A DNA stretch of 64,000 nt, taken from Basidiobolus meristosporus CBS 931.73 (lineage: Eukaryota; Fungi; Basidiobolomycota). Shown here one piece after another: positions 2,674-64,000 of the stretch (its first letter is position 1; the number at the start of each line of letters is the position of its first letter). The stretch covers positions 97,999 to 161,998 of the forward strand of contig MCFE01000120.1 in NCBI GenBank assembly GCA_002104905.1, given 5' to 3'. The position numbers and the translations under genes were made by a program. The notes beneath the pieces were generated by a model. The model was not told the origin of the DNA. It did no database searches and saw only the letters and a program-made list of their open reading frames with translations.

Positions 2674-5290
2674 GTGGCTGATAGGATAGATGCAATGGCC
2701 CAGAGAAATCAGAAAGTAGTTTAGAAGCAGGATGAGCAGATAAAAGGTATGGAGCAATCAATATTTCAGTTAGAGCAAGCAGTGTCCTTGCTGCAAAGAA
2801 GGAACTCAAGTAGCTCAATGTCACAGCCAAGAATTAAGCCATTTCCCTGTGTGACAGCAGAGGAACACTGTACAGTGTTTGAAGCACAAAAACACTCCCC
2901 AAAGATAAAGCCTACAGAAAAAATATCACAGCATGGGAGGTAGAAGATATAGTGTTTATACCAAAGCCCAAAATCAAAAGACATTGAAGATCCATGCAGC
3001 TGTTAAGTGTAATGATGAAGAGTGGGCTAGTATTCAAGTGGTCACCAAAGGTCTAGTATGAAAACACTGTAAGGCCAGCATATAATTAAACTATCAGGAA
3101 CTTAAGGCCCAGCAGAATGCACTTGACTTGCTCCATGAGAATTATCTTGGATTCAAACAAGCAAATGGCTTTTGGGCAAGCATTGCTATGCTAAGAAAGT
3201 TACTCAAGAATAGTGGAAACTATCAAAGGCAGAAAAACAAGTGTGAAATGGCTAAAAACTAGCAGCCTCCTCAAGAGCCTGTTAGAAGCAGATCCAAATG
3301 CTTCAAACAGGCATCAAAGAGGCATCAGGTAGCTGGAAGAGTGTCAAAAAGGGAAAGGCAGGCAGACACAGAATCACAAGCACAGCATATACCAAGGAAA
3401 AAGTGTAGTTCTACTCAAGAAGCACTCAGTCAAAGCAGCAGTGAAGGACCTGGCAGTGATAAACACAGGCAGTGTAGTAGGGTCACAGTGACATCAACTG
3501 ACAGATGTGCTCATTCCTGTATTTTCTACTTCCCTATATCTCTACCACACTTACTTTGGTTTTGTCCCATTTGTCTTACGTGATCAGTACTATCCCATAA
3601 GCCAGTTGACTATCACCCCTGCTTACCTTATTGCATAAGTTACCCCTCACTATATGTAAGATTAGTAGCAACAAGTGCTTCTATATTAGGCAACTCTACT
3701 GCACTTATTGTATTTTTATCACATTTGTCCTACTTGAACAGTACTATCCATAAGCTGGCTGACTATGACACCTGCTTACCTTATTGCATAAGTTATCCCT
3801 CACATTATGTAGGACTACCAGCTGTAAGTGCTTCTATATTAGGCAGCACCTGCTGCCATACCTGTGAGATATGGTCAGCCTATGCCACCATCCCTACCAT
3901 TTCTATACCATATATGGTATCCCTACATTACACAGGTTTCCAAATACTGGTTCCTGATTGGTTGGATGTGCAGTGCCTCTTAGAACCTTCTGGCACCTAC
4001 TTAAAATGCTCTTAGCTCATTCTGATATCATTAAGATTTCTATAGATCTCCAGAACTTTCTGGAACACCATTATTAGTAATATTTTAGCCAGTGAGAAAA
4101 GTATATCAGGGAGGTAATTCCTCAACAATCAATCATCATCCCTTTTATCAATATTCCAACTTTTTGATTAGTGTGATCACTGCTATCTGCTGCTACCTGA
4201 ACTGCCAACCCCAGACCACAGGACACTCCCAGGAGACCACGCTGACAGCCAACTGACCTTGGAGGCACTACTTGTGAGGAATACCCAGAGTAGGTATCTT
4301 TTATTATATTTGATTCCTTCCCAAGTTTGTTCTTGTACAGGCAAAGATACTTTTCTGTCTTTGTAGCTATTGACCACAGCTGCATTCTTATCAAGTCCCT
4401 TCTGGTCAAGTTTATAGTTGTTTTGACTTTGGAAGCTTTAGTATATTGTCATCTCAAAGGACAAGGAAGCAAGCACATACTTTTGTTACAATGCCAACTA
4501 AGTTGGGGATTCTAGCTCAAAGGTTTTCCCTTGTCAAGCTTGTGGCTTTATTCCCTATCACAATAGATTAGAGACAGAACCCATGTATTCCTTGTAAGCT
4601 TTTGCCAGAGGTTATTGCACCCAGTGAACACCCACACACATAATACTTGAGAAGTGATGGGTGTATCTCTCCCTAGCCCAGGACAGACTGAATTCTATGA
4701 TAGCCAAGAAGAGTTACCAACATGAAAGCAGCTGTTTTCACAATAGTTGGCAGTGCAGCCAGTTAGCTACACTTCAGTGAGGTAGATGAGTTTGTGGAGA
4801 AAGGCAATTTGTCTACTACAGCCTCCATGTCCTCCATTGTTGACAGTGCAGATATCCCACTGACAGACAAAGGAGCAACATCAAGAACTCAAAAGGTTAT
4901 CACACTGCCTTTGATAAAATTTTGGTATGTCAATAGGCACACCAAGAGGTTGTAGCACTTCTTCAAAAGCAGTGCTCAAGAAAACGCACTTGAATATTGC
5001 AATGACTTTTTACAAAGACTGGCAGATAGGGAGCTAGACCTTACAGTGCCAGCTGAAAACCAGGACATGTGGGAGCCAGTAAGGAACAGTGGCATGAAGC
5101 CATTACATTCCTGCCAAAGTCATAGAAAGAGAGTGGTATAGCAGAAATTCTTATTGAGTGGTGGATTTTAATGGAGTTGCTTGTTGAGCATGGGGTTGGG
5201 CTTAATGTTAGTGTAGGGTATAGTGACTTATATAGGTCAACACACTTGACAATGGAGGTACAACTGAAGTTCCCACAGAAATTAATCAAT
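2674..5290 (+). repeat. Unclassified degenerate repeat C (gag/ORF1-like), interrupted by an inverted LTR B
   Basis: 3324-3470 and 4675-5290 are homologous to 15821-16864; broken plus-strand ORFs; CpG-depleted. Confidence 0.55.
3473..4674 (+). mobile_element. Inverted LTR B copy, one end truncated, with ~154-bp internal tandem duplication
   Basis: Reverse complement of LTR B starting TGTAGTAGGG; ~20 nt missing at the far end; AGTACTATCC(C)ATAAG at 3586 and again at 3740. Confidence 0.85.
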
Positions 5291-41049: not shown

Positions 41050-42819
41050 CTACTCTTGTTTGGACTTGACAGACTTCATCCAATTGATCATCGAATTTCC
41101 GAGGAATTGGATCACCTCGTCGGCAGTCACGGCAATCCTGTCCTTCCAAGTGAGAAGAACTGGTTGAATCTCCTCGTATGCTTCTTTGGCAAGTCTAGGG
41201 ATCTGTGCGGAGAATTGCATTCCCATATTGGCCAACATCTGGATGCACTTCACCATCATGGGCCACATGGGCTCCAGATAGCTTTGGACCAGCTGCTGTG
41301 CGAATCTCGCGGCCTGTTCCGTGTAGACCAGACCTCTTTTGCTTATGGAGGCGATACACCTCAACTGCTCCCCGAAGTTAAACGAGAGTGGCTTCAATAT
41401 GGTGGCCAGCGATCGGAGCCCGGAGAGCATGGCGGCGCCACACGCGATCGTGTAATCCACTGCTAGTTGAAAAACGCTAGTCGCATGTTGGCAAAGATTT
41501 GAGCCTGCGATTACAATGAATCCCCATGCATGCGTCAACCCGTCTTGGAGCGGGGACCAGGCAAGCACAGCCCAACCCTGGAGCACCTTCAGTGAGTTCC
41601 AAAATGTATTTCTGAAGAACCTGTAAACTCTCAGCGACTTAATGACGGCAAGCCGATGCACTTCAATGGCAGCTTGATAAGCACTCTTCAGATTGCTGAA
41701 GAAATACTTCGAGCAGCGATATGCTTGGCACGTAAAGGAGAATGCGCCCTCGCAGAAGATGACCAGTGAACTGGTTAACATCGCCCAGGCTCTTGGCACC
41801 CCCGTCGTCCATAACCATACAATGCTCGTCTTGAGTAGGCGGTAGGTAAGTTTGCAGACCTCCCAGCCGATCATGATGGAATATTCCTGAAACATTGCCA
41901 GCGAAGAGTGATAAAAACTACGGATGCCTGAACCTAGGCGTCTGAGATGGCATTGGATGTGCCTTTCCCACGTGGGTGCAATTTTGCTGAGAAGGTTACT
42001 GCAACCGACGTACACATTCGACCAGATTCGTTCGAGATTGCGATTGATCATGGTAATTAGAGGCTTGACGGCTGGGATCAAAGAGTACACCTTTCCTGTG
42101 AAAAGGTAAAGGTCTCGAAGATCATCCAACAGGTCGAATATGAGCACCTGAAGGCATTGGATGGCTAGTTTTCCCAGGAAGCACCCTCTAGACACCACCC
42201 AAGAGGAAACATCGAACACAAGGGTGGTGAACGACTGAACAAACCGGCTTAACAGGGTGTTCTCAAGGATAGCAGCGATGGAATGGCAGGTTCGCCAGAA
42301 ATACGCCGAGCCAAGGTAACCGAGCTCAAGTGCACTACGGGCGAAGCGATTCGCAGCTGGCAGTAGGTGCTTGCCGACTTTCAGCCCGGAATCCAGGATC
42401 AAGGCACTAGGGCGTAGAACATAGCGATTCCAGTACCAGGGGGCCACACGTTTGAATGTCTCCGGTAACTGCGCCAGGTATCCAAGAAGGCAAGTGAGTA
42501 GAAAAGGGACCTTTTCTATGGCCCAGAGAATGCCGTCGACGGTGCAGAACACCCCGATCTTATACAGACCCCAAACCAACCGGAGAAAAAGATACACAAA
42601 AGCAAGTGGGAAAAATGGGATCAGAAGCGCACGGTTGCGACGAAGGGTGGTGGGCTCTGTATCGTCTGGTTTATCTTTAATTATGTTTGCTTTCCTCTCC
42701 TTCTCTAGTCTCCAGTTTGGAGTGTATTCCCTTGCAACAAACAGGAAACAACTGAGGAAAAGTAGAATGGCACCTATCACCTTAGGTGAAGAGAACAACT
42801 GGGTGAGTACTTCCTGCAT
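41050..42819 (-). CDS. Uncharacterised 589-aa membrane/amphipathic-helix protein, single exon
   Basis: Long uninterrupted ATG-initiated ORF; two or more hydrophobic N-terminal segments; no family motif recognised. Confidence 0.75.
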   Translation of the reverse strand: MQEVLTQLFSSPKVIGAILLFLSCFLFVAREYTPNWRLEKERKANIIKDKPDDTEPTTLRRNRALLIPFFPLAFVYLFLRLVWGLYKIGVFCTVDGILWAIEKVPFLLTCLLGYLAQLPETFKRVAPWYWNRYVLRPSALILDSGLKVGKHLLPAANRFARSALELGYLGSAYFWRTCHSIAAILENTLLSRFVQSFTTLVFDVSSWVVSRGCFLGKLAIQCLQVLIFDLLDDLRDLYLFTGKVYSLIPAVKPLITMINRNLERIWSNVYVGCSNLLSKIAPTWERHIQCHLRRLGSGIRSFYHSSLAMFQEYSIMIGWEVCKLTYRLLKTSIVWLWTTGVPRAWAMLTSSLVIFCEGAFSFTCQAYRCSKYFFSNLKSAYQAAIEVHRLAVIKSLRVYRFFRNTFWNSLKVLQGWAVLAWSPLQDGLTHAWGFIVIAGSNLCQHATSVFQLAVDYTIACGAAMLSGLRSLATILKPLSFNFGEQLRCIASISKRGLVYTEQAARFAQQLVQSYLEPMWPMMVKCIQMLANMGMQFSAQIPRLAKEAYEEIQPVLLTWKDRIAVTADEVIQFLGNSMINWMKSVKSKQE

Positions 42820-56316: not shown

Positions 56317-57047
56317 TTAATGCTGGTGTATGTTGGAAAGCTTCTTGGCTATGATACTACCGATTTCAGCGATTGGTGTGGGCCTGTCCATTTGACGGTG
56401 TTGACAGTGAATATCGTACACCTCAATATCACCAAGAACGTGTGACTTTCACAGCTCTGCAGTGATCAGCGGGATGGCTTCGTGCTCGGGAATTGTAGCA
56501 CGAAAGAAGAGCACGTCGCTGCTAACGGTGAGTGGAGTAAAGTTCTTGACAAGCTTAAGATTATTTGTGATCACGCATTCGGTTTTTTCCCATAAATATT
56601 CACCCGCATTCGGCACACCAGAAGAGAGGTGCAAGCTTTCCTTTGGGTTTGATAGGGAAAAAAACCGAGTATGAGTCATGCGGATTATGGTCTAATTTAA
56701 GTAGGAGTTGCGCAAGTTCAGCAACTGTAGTTGCTTCAAATAGTATGCGCAATGGAAGCTCAGCAAGTAGTGTGGCGTGAATACAACTAGTCATTTGCAC
56801 TGCTAACAAGGAGTATCCGCCTAGTGCGAAGAAATTATCATGGCGACCGATTCGTTCGATATTCAGCAGCTCTGACCAGATTCCTGCTAGAGTGCACTCC
56901 ATTGCACCTTGCGAAGCCTCATATGCCTGAAGTGCGAAAGCATTATGGTGGGGGGATGGTAGTGCCTGCTGATCAATCTTGCTGTTAGGAGTTAGTGGCA
57001 GCTCATCTAAGCGCACAAAGGCAGATGGCGTCATGTATTCAGGTAGC
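56317..57047 (-). pseudogene. NRPS 3' fragment: end of A domain, T (PCP) domain and internally deleted thioesterase
   Basis: LPEYMTPSAF..LPLTPNSKID, DNFFALGGYSLL, VLFFRA..EL*(W)..DIEVYDIHCQH; premature stop, frameshift, GxSxG region missing; 5' part replaced by TTAGGG. Confidence 0.88.
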
Positions 57048-57061
57048 TTAGGGTTAAGGTT
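57048..57061 (+). repeat. Telomeric repeat TTAGGG TTAAGG TT at the NRPS breakpoint
   Basis: Direct sequence. Confidence 0.75.
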
Positions 57062-57169
57062 CTAAATTCTGTTATTGAATCAGATTAAGTATTGTAATAC
57101 CATTTCAACTTGATTCAAGTTGAATAGTGCAAATTGCACAAAGTAGTTATATCTATAGTAATGTGAAGG

Positions 57170-57181
57170 TTAGGGTTAGGG
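57170..57181 (+). repeat. (TTAGGG)2 at the 3' junction of LINE copy 1
   Basis: Direct sequence. Confidence 0.85.
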
Positions 57182-58011
57182 GGGTAGCAAGAGGGGTAAG
57201 AATGATTTGTGAACAACATTAATGAGGGGAATATGTTAAGGATTGATATTCATCATAAAGGGAGTGTGCTGCTTCAGATATTGCTGCCAAAGGTCTGTCA
57301 AGTACTTAAGGTATGCCAGTTTGGGTTTTTCTGACTGCAGAATATAATGAGCAAACTTCTTGATTTCAGGATCTCCAAGTATAGCTCTCTAGCAGGAGCC
57401 AGGTGTAGTGCGGTGTGTTCTCTTCCAGGTGTCAATCAGTGGGTTGTTGCAGTGGTGAAGTCTGAGATATAATCTGGTTCTAAAGTAGAGAAGTCTGATC
57501 TTATATGGCATAAACCCAAAAGCACCAAGAATAGCATGTCTGTAGGGGCATTCAGGCAGATGAGGCACCAAGGAGGTAATACACTAGACTGCAAACTTGT
57601 CAAGCTTGGAGCAGTCTCTAGAAGTAAGAGAGAGAAGTGGTAAGCCAAATTTCAGGACAGGGAAGACAAACCGGTTGAGTAGAAGGAGGCAGCTGGGAGC
57701 TGAAGCTGTTGGAGGAATAACAGCCAGTAGCTTGTGGAGTGCTTGTCTTGCCAGGATAATTCTCTTCTTCAGGTGTGCTCCAGAGTCTAGTCCAGTAGGA
57801 GGGAAAGGAAAGCCAAGATATGTAGCAGAAACCTGAGCAGGTAGAGTGCAGTACTCCAAGCTGATAGGACAACCCAAAGGTACTGTTTTTGCAATTGAAA
57901 GATAGAGATTATTCTTCTGCAGATACTGGTGGATGGTCTGGGAGTCTTGTTGCACATTGGAGGAGGATATTCTGATGTCATCAGCAAAGAGGGTAGCCAG
58001 GCAGTCAGCTG
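57179..58011 (-). mobile_element. LINE copy 1, truncated at both ends (RT C-terminal part), about 90% identical by eye to copy 2
   Basis: Aligns to 58203-59035; contains FADD; one W-to-TAG stop at 57389. Confidence 0.92.
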
Positions 58012-58037
58012 GGTTAGGGTTAGGGTTAGGGTTAGGG
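58012..58037 (+). repeat. GG(TTAGGG)4 between LINE copies 1 and 2
   Basis: Direct sequence. Confidence 0.95.
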
Positions 58038-58094
58038 GGGAGACAGTCACCAACAGGTGAAATCTTTATTTCAGTTGAAACAAAGAAGCCAGCG

Positions 58095-60863
58095 CTACTG
58101 TTGTAGCTTTGATACAAGAGTGTGTAGCTGAGGGGAATTTGTAGGTAAGTTAATAAGAAGTGATGATAGTTCTTCAGTGCTCAAGACACTGTTCAGTGGG
58201 AAGGGGGGTAGCAAGAGAGGTAAGAATGACTTGTGAACAACATTAATGAGGGGAATGTGATAAGGATTGATATTCATCATAAAGGGAGTGTGCTGCTGCA
58301 GATATTGCTGCCAAAGGTCTGTCAAGTACTTCAGGTAGGCCAGCTTGGGTTTTTCTGACTGCAGAATAAATTCAGCAAACTTCTTGACTTCAGGATCTCC
58401 AAGAATAGTTCTCCAGCAGGAGCCAGGTGCTGTGTGGTGTGTTCTCTTCCAGGCCTTAATCAGTGGGTTGTTGCAGTTGTGAAGTCTGAGGTATAATCTG
58501 GTTCTAAGGTAGAGAAGTCTGATCTTATAGGGCATAAACCCAAAAGCACCAAGAATAGCATGTCTGTAGGGGCATTCAGGCAAATGAGGCACCAAGGAGG
58601 TAATGCACCATACTGCAAACTTGTCAAGCTTAGTGCAGTCTCTAGAAGTAAGAGAGAGAAGTGGTAAGCCAAATTCCAGGACAGGGAAGACAAACTGCTT
58701 GAGTAGAAGGAGGCAGCTGGGAGCTGAAGTTGTAGGAGGAGTAACAGCCAGTAGCTTGTGGAGTGCCTGTCTTGCTAGGATAATTCTCTTCTTGAGGTGT
58801 GCTCCAGAATCTAATCCAGTAGGAAGGAAAGGAAAGCCAAGATATGTTGCCGAAACCTGAGCAGGTAGAGTGGAGTTCTCCAAGTTGATGGGAGAGCCCA
58901 AAGGTACTGTCTTTGCAATGGAAAGCTGGAGATTATTCTTCTGCAGATACTGGTGGATGGTCTGGGAGTCTTGTTGCACATTGGAGGAGGATATTCTGAT
59001 GTCATCAGCAAAGAGAGTAACCAGGCAGTCAGCTGAGAGTCTTGGGAAATCATTCAGGAAGATGGCAAACAGTATAGGACCAAGCACAGAGCCTTGAACC
59101 ACTCCATTAGGAACTGAGAACACTGGTGATTGCTCACTTGGGTGCAGAATTTTTGCTTGTGGATCCAGAAACAGAGACCTGACAAGGAGGGTGAGAGAGG
59201 TACTGGAGAAGCATTGCAACTTGGACCAAAGCAGATTTCTGTCAACTGAATCAAAGGCCTTAGTAATATCAAACAGAACTGAGGGATACTTGCACTGGAG
59301 AGAGTGATCTTGGCTAAGTATGACTGCATATTCCAAGGAGAGGCCAGGAACAAAGCCAAACTGTGCAGGATGAAGCTTGAGGGAGTCAGAGTAGAGCTCC
59401 TGAGCAAGCAGAAGCTCAAACACCTTTCTGCAGGTGGGCAGCAGAGATATTGGCCTGTAGGAGCTAGGATCCAGGTGCTTTCCTTTACCCTTGTACAGTG
59501 GCAGAACATTTGCAAAGGACCATTCCTCAGGAGTAGAAAGCTGGGCTGAGCATTGCTGAAGCAGTGGAAGCAGAAGTGCAGACATGGCCTTGGTACTAGT
59601 CTTCAGAAGCTCATAAGAGATTGTGTCCACACCTGGAGCAGTAGAGTTGGGAAGCCTCTTGAGCACATTATGGATTCTCCTTTGATCAAGTGCAAGTGGG
59701 ATGGGCAGAGTCTTGAAGTCAGGATGAAAGCCAGGAGTTGAGTACTGCTTTGTAGAGAAGAAGATGTTAGCCAGCTGCTCTGTTGAAGGTAACTTCCTGG
59801 AAGAGGGCCTCATTGCCCTGTAGAGTCTTGATACTGTTCTTGTTATAGAGTTGGAAGATTGCAGAGGCAAGGAACTCATAATATGATCCCAGAGCTGAGT
59901 ATGCAGAGTGTGGTGAATTGCCTTGGAGTGGTGTATTGCTGTCAGGAGGAGTTTCTCTGTTTTTGGGTTAGGGAAACTCAGGTAGCTTTGTTGCAGGGCT
60001 GAAACAATGGATTCCCATTTTCTTGAGGTAACAGCAGTAGTCTTGCATGGCAGTGAGAGGGAGGCAGACACCAGAATCAGATGCTTCACAAAGAGCCAGG
60101 CATAGTTGAGATCATCTGGCAGAGAAAGCAGCAAACTGGCAAGCTTCAAGTAGTTCCCAAAGTCTTTCTTCTGATTCTTGGTAGCTTTGTGGGTGAGCAC
60201 AGTAAGTTTTGGCAGCTTCTTCTTCACAACTGGTTGCATAGAAAGGGACCAGGCTGGGTGGTCAGAGGCTCTCAAGGATCCTAGCTCAGCTCCAGAGAAT
60301 TGCTTAACTTCATTCACAAAGTAGAGGGCAGCAGCAGAAGGGCAGATCCAGTCAACACATCTTTTCTCAGATTGAGCACCTAGTGCTAGCAGATGGCTTT
60401 CTCTCAGGAAGTTCAGTAGGAATGTAGACCTTGGCTTCATTCTTGCAGTTAGAGTAGTCTTGTTCTCAGGATGGGGAATGTTGAGATCTCCAAGCAAGAT
60501 AATAGGTGTTGATATAGATTGCTGGTATTGCTGAACTTTCTGGCATATAACTTGCACTTCCTGAAGGGCAAGACTTGGAGGCAGATAGCAGAGCACCAGA
60601 CTGATAGTTGGCAACTGGAGAGCAGCACAGTAAGGGGAGTAAAGAGGAACACAGAGCTGAGGAGTATTGATGGTAGAAGAGATGAAGCAGATAGAGGAGG
60701 TATTCTTTGTTCTAGGAGTAGAAAAGCAATATAGATTAGTCAAAAGTATAGAGGGTGGCTGGACATCAATCAAACACAGGAGGGAAAATCTTGAAAGAAG
60801 TCTCTCTAGAGTTGGTCTTGATGGCTGTATGCTGTTGCAGTTAAGCAACAGAACTTCAGGTAG
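58095..60863 (-). CDS. ORF2: APE endonuclease plus reverse transcriptase; no initiating ATG, in frame with ORF1
   Basis: EN: LLNCNS, YLPP, GDLN, VDW, SDH. RT: YRPISLL, QFGF, FDITKAFDSV, GVVQGSVLGP, FADD, YLG. Confidence 0.93.
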   Translation of the reverse strand, partial: LPEVLLLNCNSIQPSRPTLERLLSRFSLLCLIDVQPPSILLTNLYCFSTPRTKNTSSICFISSTINTPQLCVPLYSPYCAALQLPTISLVLCYLPPSLALQEVQVICQKVQQYQQSISTPIILLGDLNIPHPENKTTLTARMKPRSTFLLNFLRESHLLALGAQSEKRCVDWICPSAAALYFVNEVKQFSGAELGSLRASDHPAWSLSMQPVVKKKLPKLTVLTHKATKNQKKDFGNYLKLASLLLSLPDDLNYAWLFVKHLILVSASLSLPCKTTAVTSRKWESIVSALQQSYLSFPNPKTEKLLLTAIHHSKAIHHTLHTQLWDHIMSSLPLQSSNSITRTVSRLYRAMRPSSRKLPSTEQLANIFFSTKQYSTPGFHPDFKTLPIPLALDQRRIHNVLKRLPNSTAPGVDTISYELLKTSTKAMSALLLPLLQQCSAQLSTPEEWSFANVLPLYKGKGKHLDPSSYRPISLLPTCRKVFELLLAQELYSDSLKLHPAQFGFVPGLSLEYAVILSQDHSLQCKYPSVLFDITKAFDSVDRNLLWSKLQCFSSTSLTLLVRSLFLDPQAKILHPSEQSPVFSVPNGVVQGSVLGPILFAIFLNDFPRLSADCLVTLFADDIRISSSNVQQDSQTIHQYLQKNNLQLSIAKTVPLGSPINLENSTLPAQVSATYLGFPFLPTGLDSGAHLKKRIILARQALHKLLAVTPPTTSAPSCLLLLKQFVFPVLEFGLPLLSLTSRDCTKLDKFAVWCITSLVPHLPECPYRHAILGAFGFMPYKIRLLYLRTRLYLRLHNCNNPLIKAWKRTHHTAPGSCWRTILGDPEVKKFAEFILQSEKPKLAYLKYLTDLWQQYLQQHTPFMMNINPYHIPLINVVHKSFLPLLLPPFPLNSVLSTEELSSLLINLPTNSPQLHTLVSKLQQ

Positions 60864-62372
60864 TCAGGCAGAGGTTGTAGCTTCTTCAGAGGCAGCATTG
60901 ACAATGTGACCTGCAGAGTCCCAGAGCTCTTCAAATGGTGCATCACTTAAGTCAGCAAGGAGGGAAATGGCATGGTTCTTGAGGAAGTATGCCACATCAT
61001 AGGAGGGGGCTTGTCTCTTGATGGCAGCAAAGAAAGACAGAATGGCAACATGGGCTGGAGGCTTGTTGAACAGTAGAGAGTCAGAGGATTCAGATTCTTC
61101 AGGCACTATCTTGAAGTCAGTTTTCAGCCAGTTAAGGTTCTTCTCCACAAAGGCAACAAATGGGTCAGCAATGTTTTGGTCTAGGATAACCTCCAGAATC
61201 TTCCCTTTTCTCCAGGCCAGGTTGACAATTCTTGAGAGCTGAATATTGCATGCCTTGAGTGCTCTCCTGATGTTGGAAATGGGAGTCCAGGGAACTTGCT
61301 TCAAGTACACCACAGTCCAGGTAGAAGCTGGTGGTAGGTTTGCTGGGGGCTTGTAAGTTCTTCTGTGTGGCAATGGAGCTGCAGTAGTCAGATTGGAGTC
61401 CACATTCTCAGTAGAGGGTTTTCTTGATGTGTCTTGCTGAATGGTACTGGAGCTGGATGTGCTGATAATTCTTGCTAGAACCTTGCCTGCATAAGTCTGA
61501 GGTATAGCTGAGGTGACTCTAGAGGTGGTGGCAGCTGGTGCAGGTGGAGAGGCAGAAACTGAAGCTGGAACTGAGGTCACCTGGGAGAAGGCAGTAGAAG
61601 CAGGTTTTCTGGGAGGAACAGAGTTCACTATCCAGTTGTTCTGTAAAACACTGGAGTAGCTTTTCAGTGGAACAGGATCTTGCTCTTGAACAGGAACAGA
61701 AGCAGGAGGCTGGGGCTGAGCAGTAGTGGTAAGGCAGTGGCACTCCAAGGAAGCTTTTTGCAAGGCATCTCTGGCAGTCTTCAGGGCAGTATTAGCTTCA
61801 TTCTTGAGCTTCTTGCATTGGGCATCCAGTCTCTTGTTTTCAATAGCCAGGGCAGTATTGGCAGCCTCTAAATCAGCAATTCTCTTCTCAATTGCAAGGA
61901 ATCTCTGAAGAAATGCATCAGTAGAAGTGCCGGCATCTGGGAGAGCAGTGGCAGGAATAGAGTCCATTGACAGTGGGCTTCTTGAAGGCAAGGAAAGTGG
62001 ACTGGCAGATTCAGGCACAAAAGGAGATATCCTGGCAGGAGGAGAAGGAGTATCCAAGGCAGTAACAGAGGCAATTCTTGTTGGTGAAGCAGCAGCAGGG
62101 GAGGCAAGCCTGTTCAGAAACTGGGCAGGAGAGAGTGCTTGAGGAGAGGGAGTCTTCAGCTTGCCAAGCATGTCTTCCATCAGAGTGATACCAATATTCC
62201 TGGTGCATTTGCAGAGAAAAGTAAGCTTCCTGAGTCTGCCAGCTCTTCCATTCCTTCTGATGGTTCCTTTGTTTCCACAGTTGGGGCAAGAAATCTTCTT
62301 GACAGACTTGTCAAAGCAATCAAGAACCTTCCTTTCAGGTATAGTGGGCTCCTGTTGAGGTTTTGGTGGCAT
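60864..62372 (-). CDS. ORF1 (502 aa): N-terminal Zn-ribbon-like motif, coiled coil, Pro/Ser/Ala-rich linkers, C-terminal globular (possibly RRM-like) domain
   Basis: CPNCG-x20-CKC; heptad segment IEKRIADLEAANTALAIENKRL; ATG at 62372. Confidence 0.85.
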   Translation of the reverse strand: MPPKPQQEPTIPERKVLDCFDKSVKKISCPNCGNKGTIRRNGRAGRLRKLTFLCKCTRNIGITLMEDMLGKLKTPSPQALSPAQFLNRLASPAAASPTRIASVTALDTPSPPARISPFVPESASPLSLPSRSPLSMDSIPATALPDAGTSTDAFLQRFLAIEKRIADLEAANTALAIENKRLDAQCKKLKNEANTALKTARDALQKASLECHCLTTTAQPQPPASVPVQEQDPVPLKSYSSVLQNNWIVNSVPPRKPASTAFSQVTSVPASVSASPPAPAATTSRVTSAIPQTYAGKVLARIISTSSSSTIQQDTSRKPSTENVDSNLTTAAPLPHRRTYKPPANLPPASTWTVVYLKQVPWTPISNIRRALKACNIQLSRIVNLAWRKGKILEVILDQNIADPFVAFVEKNLNWLKTDFKIVPEESESSDSLLFNKPPAHVAILSFFAAIKRQAPSYDVAYFLKNHAISLLADLSDAPFEELWDSAGHIVNAASEEATTSA

Positions 62373-62441
62373 ATCCAGAGTTTCAGCTTCAAATTTCAAT
62401 TTTTGAGATTTTTGGGTGATTTTTGATGGGCGGGATCAAAA

Positions 62442-62455
62442 TTAGGGTTAGGGTT
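62442..62455 (+). repeat. (TTAGGG)2TT just upstream of ORF1 of LINE copy 2
   Basis: Direct sequence. Confidence 0.85.
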
Positions 62456-62499
62456 GCGTGCTGTGACTGCTTTTTACGATCGCAAGGTCAGAACCTAGG

Positions 62500-62656
62500 A
62501 AAAAATAAAAATAGTTAGTAAAGGTGATTTAATGGATGGATGGATGGATTTGGAGTCAGATTCAATCAAAAAATCAAATCGTTGACTAATTTAAAGAGGA
62601 AAAAATAAAAATAGTTAGTAAAGGTGATTTAAAAAAATAAAAATAGTTAGTAAAGG
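62500..62656 (+). repeat. Three copies of AAAAAATAAAAATAGTTAGTAAAGG plus (ATGG)4
   Basis: Copies start at about 62500, 62600 and 62632. Confidence 0.85.
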
Positions 62657-62672
62657 TTAGGGTAGGGGAGGG
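62657..62672 (+). repeat. TTAGGG TAGGGG AGGG at the 3' junction of LINE copy 3
   Basis: Direct sequence. Confidence 0.75.
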
Positions 62673-64000
62673 AAAGTCACCAAGTTGGTGAAATCTTTAT
62701 TTGGGTTAAGAACTAATCTAAGTACAAATAAAGAAGCCAATTAAGAGGTCTAGAACCTCTCTAATAAGTAATGTAATTTATGTTTTGTTTCATCTCTAAT
62801 GTTTGTTTCAATAAAGTAAAGCTCATCAGGGGTAAATATAAAATTCAGGGGTTTTGGGGGAAGTACAAATTGTAGATGTTTCTGATCAATATAATCCAAG
62901 ACTGGAACCCAGCCTGGAATTAGGTGTAGTAGGAAAGGTGTGTGAACTTGTAAGTAGCTCTGCCACATAGATCTTAGATGGTCCTGAGCCAGTAGTCTTG
63001 GTTTCTCAGCTTTTTGAAGTTTTGAAGCAAGCTCTGTTACTACAGCAGAGCCAACCAGGGTGTGCCAGCAAGAAGATTTCAGGGAGGAGTTAGATTGAAG
63101 CCATTGTTTGATGGAGGGGTTATGTGATTTCTGAAGTTTGACTAGGAAGGAAGCACGGAGATAGATCATTCGGATTTGGTATGGGTAGAACCCAAAAACT
63201 CCATTAGTTGCATGGATATAGGGAGATACTGGAAGATAAGGTACCAAGGATCTGATACACTGATGGAGAAATTTATCCAGGCGGTGAAGTTCTCTGGAGG
63301 TTAGGGGTATAATGTGGAGACCAAATTCAAGTACTGGCAGTACATACTGCTTCAGAAGTATAGGGATCTTTTGAATTGGAGTGTCTGGAGTGACTACTAC
63401 CAGAAGCTTTTTGAGAGCCTGTTGGGCAAGATGGATCCTATTATTCAGGTGGAGCTTTGAGTCAATCCCATGTTGACAAAATGGCAGACCTAGATATATT
63501 GCAGTTTGTTGTGGCAGAATGCTAGTGGTCTGTATAGTTGTAGTGCACCCAATTGGGACTGTCTTGGAAATTGAGAGTGAGAGGTTGTTGGCAGCCAAGT
63601 ACTTCTCAATGATGGCAGTGTCTGCTATGGGATTAGGAGTAGCAATCTTGATATCATCCGCATAGAGAGTTAGTAGTGGATAGGGAGAGTCTGGTGAGGG
63701 GCCTTTTGGAAATAAAGGAAAGTTGTGTAGGAATATCACAAATAGTAAGGGACCTAGTACAGATCCTTGGACTACTCCATTTGGAACCTCATAAGTCTCT
63801 GATGTACAACTTGGATGCAAAATTTTGGCTGAGTTCTCACAAAATAGAGAACGTACAAGAAGGGTCATTGGTAGTGTGGTAACTGCTAATAGCTTTCTCC
63901 AAAGCAGAGCTCTGTCCACAGAGTCAAAGGCTTTAGTAATGTCAAACAGAATGGTTGGCAATGAGAATTGAAGTGAATGATCATGGCTTAGCACTACAGC
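62663..64000 (-). mobile_element. LINE copy 3, a second diverged family; RT C-terminal half, continues beyond the window
   Basis: Open ORF 62750-63994 with FDITKAFDSV, GVVQGSVLGP, YADD, YLG; 3' UTR motifs shared with copy 2. Confidence 0.92.

Follow-up and report, generated by a model that had tools for sequence, protein, structure and literature searches.

In the literature searched, the telomeric LINEs described from fungi, namely, MoTeR1 and MoTeR2 (Magnaporthe oryzae), FoTeR (Fusarium oxysporum), and Cnl1 (Cryptococcus), all use a REL-type endonuclease; the initial annotation of the present locus had listed MoTeR and Cnl1 as having REL endonucleases or none. These elements are placed in the CRE/SLACS clade, and their only ORF codes for a reverse transcriptase (RT) with a REL (PD-D/ExK) endonuclease C-terminal to it (PMC12857005). 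The Basidiobolus element described here resembles them in being found only at TTAGGG ends with the 5' end distal, in carrying telomere repeat at each 3' junction without poly(A), in forming truncated head-to-tail arrays with very short interstitial tracts and variable 5' repeats, and in having a short non-autonomous partner with a common 3' end (PMC7367193, PMC12857005). Unlike them, it has two ORFs, ORF1 and an ORF2 that begins with an APE endonuclease domain, no REL domain being found by Pfam or by eye, and it resides in a zoopagomycete, whereas the hosts of MoTeR, FoTeR, and Cnl1 belong to the Dikarya.

With respect to gene content, the element resembles TRAS and SART (Bombyx, Tribolium, and aphids; R1 clade) and Tx1-1_ACar (Anolis), which are likewise two-ORF APE LINEs specific for telomeric repeats (PMC10088271, PMC7265360); Tx1-1_ACar is included in a list of elements that have telomeric tandem repeats as their insertion sites (PMC10088271). 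The polarity of TRAS is also the same. However, TRAS and SART have a poly(A) 3' end and insert inside long tracts, whereas the Basidiobolus element ends in a C-run followed by CCCTAA repeats and is associated with tracts of 1 to 2 units; their gag-like ORF1 has CCHC zinc knuckles, which were not found by a zf-CCHC search of the Basidiobolus ORF1, and RT identity to arthropod elements is only ~30 to 35%. Endonuclease-deficient Penelope-like elements (Athena, Coprina, and a putative family in Zymoseptoria), as presented in PMC4522978 (citing Gladyshev and Arkhipova 2007), end at the 3' side in telomere repeats of reverse-complement sequence, which can pair with the G overhang, and are subterminal in a fixed orientation, with the 3' end away from the telomere, as is the case here; these elements, however, combine a PLE-type RT with the lack of an endonuclease, whereas the Basidiobolus element has a LINE-type RT and a conserved APE domain. 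Finally, HeT-A, TART, and TAHRE of Drosophila share with it the variably 5'-truncated head-to-tail arrays, the distal 5' end, a strong strand bias, and possibly an ORF1-only partner, but telomerase repeats are absent from Drosophila, where the junctions are oligo(A), in contrast to the TTAGGG junctions and ~30-unit (TTAGGG) caps found here. We describe a lineage with two or more autonomous families, A and B among them, together with non-autonomous passengers that have the same 3' module.

RESULTS

Layout of the locus. The window, i.e., the whole stretch of 64,000 nucleotides that was analyzed, ends where its contig (C225) terminates, so that positions 57048 to 64000 are the final ~7 kb of the contig. 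From left to right, a broken NRPS gene is followed by a TTAGGGTTAAGG cap, a 110-bp filler, a truncated family A copy, a full-length family A copy, and a family B copy of which only the 3' part is present, with all LINE pieces stacked head to tail on the minus strand:

56600 to 57047, minus strand: 3' remnant of an NRPS gene, comprising the end of an A domain (LPEYMTPSAF...LPLTPNSKID motif) and then PP-binding (Pfam PP-binding, E 1.6e-12)
57048 to 57059, plus strand: TTAGGGTTAAGG tract capping the broken NRPS gene
57060 to 57169, no strand: unclassified filler of 110 bp between two telomeric tracts
57170 to 57185, plus strand: TTAGGGTTAGGG joined to a G-run, junction with the truncated A copy
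57178 to 58013, minus strand: family A copy with both ends missing, covering A positions 3564 to 4397 of 4561
58014 to 58037, plus strand: (TTAGGG)4 junction
58038 to 58094, minus strand: family A 3' module
58095 to 60863, minus strand: family A ORF2, N-terminal APE endonuclease and reverse transcriptase (RVT_1, E 1.4e-24; Exo_endo_phos_2, E 2.9e-4)
60864 to 62399, minus strand: family A ORF1, 511 aa
62400 to 62598, minus strand: family A 5' UTR, with a fixed internal TTAGGGTTAGGG at 62442 to 62453
62599 to 62656, minus strand: additional 58 nt duplicating part of the A 5' UTR
62657 to 62672, plus strand: TTAGGGTAGGGGAGGG, true junction between the family A 5' end and the family B 3' end
62657 to 64000, minus strand: 3' portion of a family B LINE, with its 3' module and the C-terminal 414 aa of ORF2

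The NRPS remnant is broken off at 57047, its translated frame entering the telomeric tract, and a single 2,948-nt Logan unitig covers 56500 to 57116 with 0 differences. The TTAGGGTTAAGG at 57048 to 57059 marks a healed chromosome break. When the adjacent 110-bp filler was compared with families A, B, and E, the SINE-like element, and every fetched locus, telomere repeats were the sole match. The doubly truncated A copy (57178 to 58011) is 93% identical to the full copy and has three stops in the ORF2 frame. The full-length family A LINE measures 4,561 bp and carries ORF1 followed by the APE and RT ORF2. The family B ORF2 (62750 to 63994, minus strand) is 48% identical to that of family A, and the element continues past the contig end. 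The order of A then B is repeated on a sister contig (C191), and both contigs break off within family B.

The initial annotation had reported three minus-strand copies from two families, with TTAGGG tracts at 57048, 57170, 58014, 62442, and 62657 marking every junction. All five tracts are present on the plus strand, and the minus strand was confirmed for ORF1, ORF2 (58095 to 60848), and the family B ORF2; the count, however, has to be revised to four pieces including the filler. TTAGGG was likewise confirmed at the real junctions, but the tract at 62442 does not mark one: since the same TTAGGGTTAGGG with the same ~145 nt was seen in every copy examined, 62442 to 62453 is internal to the A 5' UTR, which, together with this repeat, is identical in at least 18 copies. 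Nor does the contig run rightward into a long (TTAGGG)n, a feature for which a check had been suggested, as it stops at base 64000 inside family B; sister contigs finish in ~20 to 40 TTAGGG units. In the window, the single TTAGGG hexamer is not enriched (27 observed versus 31.7 expected), whereas the dimer, allowing up to 1 mismatch, is (8 versus 0.23 expected; none of 100 shuffles gave as many). Six of the eight dimer matches lie within the final 7 kb, all on the plus strand. The composition is also strand biased, with 103 G3 runs versus 15 C3 runs, and the G-rich strand is continuous with the telomeric G strand.

Proteins encoded. With its LINE-type RT, N-terminal APE domain, constant 3' and variable 5' ends, and lack of LTRs, the element is an APE-type non-LTR retrotransposon. 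ORF1 consists of an N-terminal Cys-rich motif, a coiled coil, and a C-terminal domain and ends in the stop UGA followed by CUA. A search for zf-CCHC gave no match at E values up to 1, with only weak coiled-coil-type matches, and all of the only 7 homologs belong to this lineage, one of them being from Basidiobolus ranarum. The family A ORF2 is without an AUG, the ORF1 frame continuing after the single UGA. Among solved structures, its RT is closest to human L1 ORF2p (E 2.3e-12), while the nearest RTs outside the lineage are arthropod and mucoralean proteins with about 30 to 36% identity; a search of the ESM Atlas returned generic APE and RT clusters only.

The APE domain proposed in the initial annotation was borne out. 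PF03372/PF14529 matches were obtained for 4 family members. While sequence and profile searches of the PDB with the APE region gave no match at E values up to 10, a fold search did, the top Foldseek matches all being APE1, ExoIII, TRAS1 EN, or L1 EN with a probability of 1.00; the model used was a 5-sequence AF2 model with a pLDDT of 60, which replaced a single-sequence model with a pLDDT of 41. Alignment revealed the motifs N, Y, GDLN (GDxN), D, and SDH, with the Glu of motif II replaced by Asp throughout the family, and these active-site motifs are conserved in relatives of only 48 to 63% identity. With regard to a REL endonuclease, Pfam finds APE and RT only and nothing 3' of the RT, and inspection of the translation by eye revealed no Cys/His motif of the REL type. 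Several truncated copies retain a fully open ORF2 frame.

Genomic location and abundance. A DNA search with family A gave 39 matches of 91 to 100% identity, all on the plus strand and all from the 32 of 770 candidates that were scored; the 32 full or near-full A copies among them have 98 to 100% identity. In place of the dispersal through the genome that the initial annotation had named as evidence against its reading, all 20 of 20 full-length A copies lie 0.2 to 6.3 kb from the right contig end with the strand locked. The assembly is redundant and its contig orientation odd, making copy and end counts rough. The family A 3' motif occurs 921 times (835 forward and 86 reverse), 91% of the occurrences having the same strand as the TTAGGG tracts in this genome, and TTAGGGx4 occurs 7604 times forward and 81 times reverse. 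On large contigs the motif is confined to the last ~20 kb; among the first 292 contigs, ~20% carry A 3' ends, as do ~70% of the contigs of 160 to 175 kb. Of 21 sampled contig ends, 16 terminate in 112 to 238 bp of TTAGGG, and no family A copy was found in positions 1 to 57000 of the window. The elements are located exclusively at chromosome ends.

Junctions, 3' module, and 5' ends. The family A 3' module is predicted to fold as RNA (-18.1 kcal/mol, z -4.4) into a stem (CUUCUUUGUUU/AAAUAAAGA) and a hairpin (UCACC-UGUU-GGUGA), followed by a single-stranded tail, CUGUCUCCCCCC(UAACCC)n. It is kept in 9 elements from at least 4 families and in 4 other samples. At the 3' junctions, (T)TAGGG is joined to a G-run in 26 of 26 cases; poly(A), another feature named as speaking against telomere targeting, was found in 0 of 26, all ending in a C-run plus TAA(CCCTAA)n. 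To at least some extent, the TTAGGG at the junctions is copied from the 3' end of the element itself rather than representing telomere that was already there. Stacked copies share one constant 3' nucleotide and differ in their 5' truncation points, and the loose ends of independent unitigs provide more truncation points on the same 3' ends. At terminal junctions, microhomology to the repeat register amounts to 1 to 3 nt of G/T. The G6-TAGCAAG of the junction at 57170 to 57185 is also found inside the full A copy at 58201 to 58213, which places the priming of the truncated A copy at a C6 tract within the RNA. On another contig (C2), 3' ends were observed at 120-bp spacing.

In the sense orientation, the full-length family A element starts with CCTCTTTAAATT..., as do two relatives (L030 and L034); three copies (L006, L011, and L012) have 2 to 3 tandem 5' monomers of ~101 nt.

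Passengers and relatives. Two other elements, one SINE-like (~530 bp) and one with an ORF1-like frame, share the family A 3' module. ARAGORN found no tRNA in the SINE-like element, despite the T-arm-like GGTTCAAATCC. Relatives with an ORF2 48 to 80% identical are present in other samples and in B. ranarum; in those at 59 to 80% with assembled 3' ends, the 3' module has been retained along with the CCCTAA tail and the head-to-tail stacking, and the same architecture is seen in contigs of at least 5 other samples, which were assembled independently.

DISCUSSION

The data presented here support the overall interpretation of the initial annotation, and we consider it highly probable that these elements form a telomere-specific APE-type LINE family in a Basidiobolus-like zoopagomycete which spreads by a cycle of G-strand-primed addition. 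Transcription would initiate at the 5' UTR (sense CCTCTTT...), ORF1 would be translated, and ORF2 would be produced past the in-frame UGA; transcription, the true 3' end of the RNA, and activity are predicted here from the DNA. The conserved two-hairpin 3' module may then be bound by the RT, and the single-stranded tail (C6 and then CCCUAA repeats) could pair with the TTAGGG 3' end of the G strand, with cDNA synthesis being primed at a nick introduced by APE or, where a telomere is very short, at its natural overhang. As the G strand would be extended by the element antisense, the 3' end would come to lie proximal and the 5' end distal. Early stops of synthesis would be common and give the variable 5' truncations, and the new 3' end would be either re-capped by telomerase with ~20 to 40 TTAGGG units or used by the next element, leading to head-to-tail stacks. 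The conservation of the APE domain argues for nicking, for which a pure end-priming model would have no need.

It is conceivable, if somewhat unlikely, that the elements instead behave as TRAS does, with APE nicking the G strand inside duplex repeats at a specific position, followed by insertion within the tract through classical, endonuclease-dependent target-primed reverse transcription and retention of the distal repeats as a cap. The conserved active-site motifs in relatives 48 to 63% identical, the likeness to TRAS1 EN in Foldseek, the shared orientation, and the telomeric units on both flanks of the elements are all in keeping with this, and 3 repeats suffice for SART1 (PMC7265360). However, internal TTAGGG tracts have ~1 to 2 units (maximum, ~8) compared with ~30 at the termini, while random insertion should leave longer proximal tracts unless these were later lost, and many junctions hold no TTAGGG beyond what the element 3' end templates. 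The absence of poly(A), the internal C6 priming in one copy, and the replacement of the catalytic Glu of motif II by Asp in the entire family also argue against such a mechanism. The short internal tracts fit priming on nearly eroded ends, but they fit equally well the breakage loss of longer interstitial tracts, as occurs in MoTeR arrays (PMC7367193), or template jumping.

Break-induced replication copies MoTeR arrays between ends (PMC7367193), and the A-then-B order common to the two sister contigs, as well as the ~101-nt tandem monomers at some 5' ends, would be compatible with arrays that now spread mainly by such replication or by unequal subtelomere exchange, the elements being a retrotransposon-derived subtelomeric repeat. 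We regard this as improbable, since the truncation point differs at almost every junction, whereas the 3' ends are all identical, a pattern characteristic of independent reverse transcription; furthermore, 32 full or near-full copies are 98 to 100% identical, several truncated copies have an open ORF2, and unrelated passengers have the 3' module alone in common. That the fragmented assembly, with its contigs nearly all telomere-right (7604 versus 81) and its near-duplicate small contigs (C21 and C22), created the arrays at contig ends, through misjoining of repeats or chimeras among the long reads, is very improbable and was rejected on the short-read-type unitig that crosses the NRPS/telomere junction with 0 differences, the recurrence of the architecture in at least 5 independently assembled samples pointing in the same direction. 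Several LINE clades have short tandem repeats as 3' ends, and an ordinary dispersed LINE could carry a microsatellite-type tail that resembles the telomere repeat by chance. This reading is scarcely credible and was rejected on the contig-end-only location and the orientation fixed relative to the G strand; the terminal (TTAGGG)n caps that sit directly on truncated 5' ends and the adjacent 57 kb of unique DNA without copies also speak against it.

Returning to G-strand-primed addition, a further possibility, which we regard as doubtful, is that the addition of retroelements, namely, the LINE, its SINE, and an ORF1-bearing partner, constitutes a second, host-tolerated or useful way of rebuilding ends, which would prefer ends nearly devoid of TTAGGG, pair through the C-run and CCCUAA with the last G-strand nucleotides, and be followed by re-capping by telomerase.

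In summary, here we describe APE-type LINEs at fungal telomeres, which is new in that the fungal telomeric LINEs described in the searched literature are all of the REL type, and the putative telomeric Penelope-like elements of Zymoseptoria are of the endonuclease-less subtype. Telomere-specific retrotransposons are few, and each reveals a parasite settling in, or contributing to, chromosome ends. An APE and RT lineage with ORF1 and trans-mobilized passengers has come to occupy the same niche, with the same polarity and telomere-repeat tail, which is a case of independent convergence. The system is abundant (~900 3' ends), young (32 copies with 98 to 100% identity), and conserved across Basidiobolus-like genomes. 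As the host fungus is culturable, it can be addressed whether a nick or an overhang serves as the primer, how telomerase and RT share the ends, and whether the arrays explain the fragmented, many-ended karyotype of the fungus. If retroelement addition does serve as a second way of rebuilding ends, Basidiobolus would be a culturable intermediate between telomerase-only and Drosophila-type retrotransposon telomeres, at most of its many ends.

RESULTS

The array at the right end of the window begins in a broken gene. The NRPS frame (minus strand, within 56600-57059), which retains the end of the A domain and the PP-binding domain, enters the telomeric tract without a gap at 57047/57048; the break inside the A domain coincides exactly with the TTAGGGTTAAGG tract, and, in a separate read set of this sample, a 2,948-nt unitig covers 56500-57116 with zero differences. 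The continuity of the frame with the tract and the matching unitig thus indicate a chromosome end that arose from a break within the gene, and the sequence of events is a break in the NRPS gene, healing (a healed terminal deletion), and then the addition of elements. From left to right, the broken gene is followed by the TTAGGGTTAAGG tract, a 110-bp filler with no match among the loci compared, TTAGGGTTAGGG, a doubly truncated family A copy (57178-58011; A positions 3564-4397, 93% identity), (TTAGGG)4, a full-length family A element, a single TTAGGG-like unit, and the 3' part of family B, the ORF2 of which is 48% identical to that of family A.

Elements and ORFs of the array
58038-62598, minus strand: full-length family A element, 4,561 bp
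58095-60848, minus strand: family A ORF2, 917 amino acids (RVT_1, E 1.4e-24; weak Exo_endo_phos_2 match)
60864-62399, minus strand: family A ORF1, 511 amino acids
62750-63994, minus strand: family B RT ORF, reaching the window end

All five TTAGGG tracts of the initial annotation are present, on the + strand, where it had placed them. That at 62442, taken there for a junction, instead lies inside the family A 5' UTR: in a comparison with 20 other copies, TTAGGGTTAGGG is followed by the same downstream sequence (TTGCGCGCTGTGACTGC...) in every copy and, on this alignment, is a fixed internal part of the UTR. A and B in fact join at 62657. Single TTAGGG hexamers are not enriched in the window (27 versus 31.7 expected); dimers with at most one mismatch number 8 versus 0.23 expected, six of them within the last 7 kb. 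The sense-strand 5' end of family A is CCTCTTTAAATT. The full-length copy in the window carries 58 extra nt duplicating part of the 5' UTR, and at L006, L011, and L012 (loci on contigs C571, C443, and C232) the first ~101 nt of the 5' end form 2-3 tandem monomers directly beneath the terminal TTAGGG tract, comparable to the 5' VNTRs that MoTeR and FoTeR carry or to promoter monomers. The CpG observed/expected ratio is 0.05 in the array (57060-64000; 0.03 in family A) versus 0.50 in 1-57000, a near absence despite young, coding copies, and the + strand of the array has 103 G3 runs versus 15 C3 runs, with a GC skew of +0.22 to +0.29.

A DNA search of the Basidiobolus meristosporus assembly (89.5 Mb, 1,366 contigs) with family A returned 770 candidates; scoring of 32 of these yielded 39 matches (91-100% identity), every one on the contig + strand. 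All 20 of the 20 full-length copies lie 0.2-6.3 kb from the right contig end. The 28-nt motif of the family A 3' end has 835 forward and 86 reverse occurrences and TTAGGGx4 has 7,604 and 81, respectively, the contigs being nearly all telomere-right. On large contigs, all motif matches fall within the last ~20 kb, and a few reverse matches lie near left ends (e.g., C80:1371, C142:2214, and C291:2142). No copy was found in window positions 1-57000. Because copies are terminal, strand-locked, and absent from this stretch, they do not show the dispersed, poly(A)-tailed pattern with target-site duplications that had been named as contrary to insertion at, or extension of, telomeres. The expectation that the contig would end to the right in a long (TTAGGG)n failed for contig C225 itself (161,998 bases, the window being 97999-161998), which ends at window base 64000 with an RT ORF reaching its end, and held at 16 of 21 sampled ends (C1 included), with terminal TTAGGG of 112-238 bp.

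The TTAGGGx4 count corresponds to roughly 270 terminal tracts in 89.5 Mb, contig C1 is only 345 kb long, and ~70% of the 160- to 175-kb contigs finish in an array; this number points either to a large set of small chromosomes or to variable ends represented redundantly by several contigs, combined with a rule by which the assembler orients contigs. The left end of C291 (L028; C291:1-6000) holds fragments of A, E, and the SINE in an inverted array that lacks a terminal CCCTAA tract, and its right end holds a forward array; C291 may be a nearly complete 161-kb chromosome. Three family A 3' ends at C2:259984-260251 are spaced by exactly 120 bp; they may represent a tandem array of copies that are very short, or the 3' module may have given rise to a minisatellite there.

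Copies in the arrays share a 3' start nucleotide, differ in their 5' stop positions, and stand head to tail with a terminal tract as a cap. In 26 of 26 examined 3' junctions, (T)TAGGG is fused to a G-run, followed by AGACA or GGAAA and then a hairpin; poly(A) was found in none of the 26. At many junctions, the telomeric sequence does not exceed the single unit that the element's own end (...CCCCCCTAA) would template, and TTAGGG at every junction, as initially described, is therefore correct as to its presence but is partly the element's own sequence. Internal tracts mostly have 1-2 units (maximum, ~8) versus ~20-40 in terminal tracts. In the copy at 57178-58011, the final 164 nt of the element are missing, and the copy begins instead at an internal C6 tract, which the full copy also contains; this suggests that a G-ended primer annealed there. 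Terminal caps are preceded by G or T microhomology of 1-3 nt to the repeat register, and the full-length cDNA end, ...AAAGAGG(G), would be a good telomerase substrate. At loose unitig ends, the same 3' ends are joined to further truncation points; unitig depth, which does not equal copy number, is ~nine-fold lower at the 5' end of the element than at its 3' end.

The APE domain assigned to family A was borne out on several grounds. Four family members independently matched PF03372 or PF14529; a structure model (5-sequence alignment; pLDDT 60, residues 63-200 mostly 70-93) retrieved only APE1, ExoIII, TRAS1 EN, and L1 EN at a fold search probability of 1.00; and the N, Y, GDxN, D, and SDH motifs line up with those of 15 other APE-LINEs, with the motif II Glu replaced by Asp throughout the family. 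Since these motifs are kept between relatives only 48-63% identical, the domain is probably in use. Compared with the 15 APE-LINEs, the ORF2 of the family has ~9 fewer residues immediately before the conserved (K/E)KRCVDW motif (residues ~150-165; window ~60350-60400), in a region that forms a DNA-recognition hairpin in L1 EN. ORF1 ends at UGA-CUA (60849-60866), and ORF2, which has no AUG, continues the same frame; the ORFs of relatives L021 and L022 are likewise in frame. This arrangement suggests stop-codon read-through or re-initiation.

The 57-nt 3' UTR is predicted to form two hairpins with a single-stranded pyrimidine tail behind them (-18.1 kcal/mol, z -4.4), the first stem pairing the box CUUCUUUGUUU with AAAUAAAGA and the second being UCACC-loop-GGUGA. 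Families A and B, element E, and a SINE-like element all keep this module, as do five elements of other samples; the loops and apical parts vary. Element E (L001:688-1528) has an ORF1-like C-terminal region directly followed by the module and, from this layout, may be an ORF1-only partner. The SINE-like element (L001:159-687; ~530 bp) has a T-arm-like GGTTCAAATCC and an internal repeat of ~77 nt; ARAGORN called no tRNA in it. Both are stacked within terminal arrays.

Among 1.84 billion representatives scanned exhaustively with HMMER, five members of the lineage were found, beyond which identity falls to ~30-36% in the RT core only; outside the lineage, the closest proteins of named source come from arthropods and, in one case, from the mucoralean Parasitella, and all are annotated as "hypothetical." Family A ORF1 has a Basidiobolus ranarum homolog at 56% identity, and the unique ORF at 41050-42819, a neighbor of the array, has one homolog among 5.8 billion proteins, also in B. 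ranarum (46% identity). Relatives that share the 3' module, the CCCTAA tail, and the head-to-tail stacking occur on contigs of at least five other samples; in L034, two full-length elements of different families are joined by ...CCTCCCCTAACCC|TCTTTGATT...

DISCUSSION

The evidence best supports a mechanism in which reverse transcription is target-primed by a TTAGGG G-strand end, with re-capping by telomerase as a later step. The 3' end of the G-strand would pair with the C-run/CCCUAA tail of the element RNA and prime reverse transcription of the element, and telomerase would then re-cap the new end. As to the primer, we lean toward the natural terminus of a telomere that has eroded almost completely over an APE nick within duplex repeats, which we consider possible but rather unlikely. 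In MoTeR arrays, interstitial tracts of at least 3 repeats break and only those of at most 2 are stable (PMC7367193); by analogy, the short internal tracts seen here could alternatively reflect loss of longer ones by breakage.

Our literature search found no link between Basidiobolus and telomeric retroelements. The fungal telomeric LINEs MoTeR, FoTeR, and Cnl1 belong to the CRE clade and have REL endonucleases (PMC12857005), whereas family A has an APE. In Zymoseptoria, a putative endonuclease-less Penelope-like family has TTAGGG at its 3' ends (PMC4522978). TRAS and SART of insects are APE-type telomeric LINEs, and Tx1-1_ACar of the anole lizard is counted among telomere-inserting elements (PMC10088271). 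Telomere-specific LINEs are thus already known; here, APE machinery is found in an early-diverging fungus, in which the telomeric LINEs are accompanied by passengers and occupy a large share of chromosome ends.
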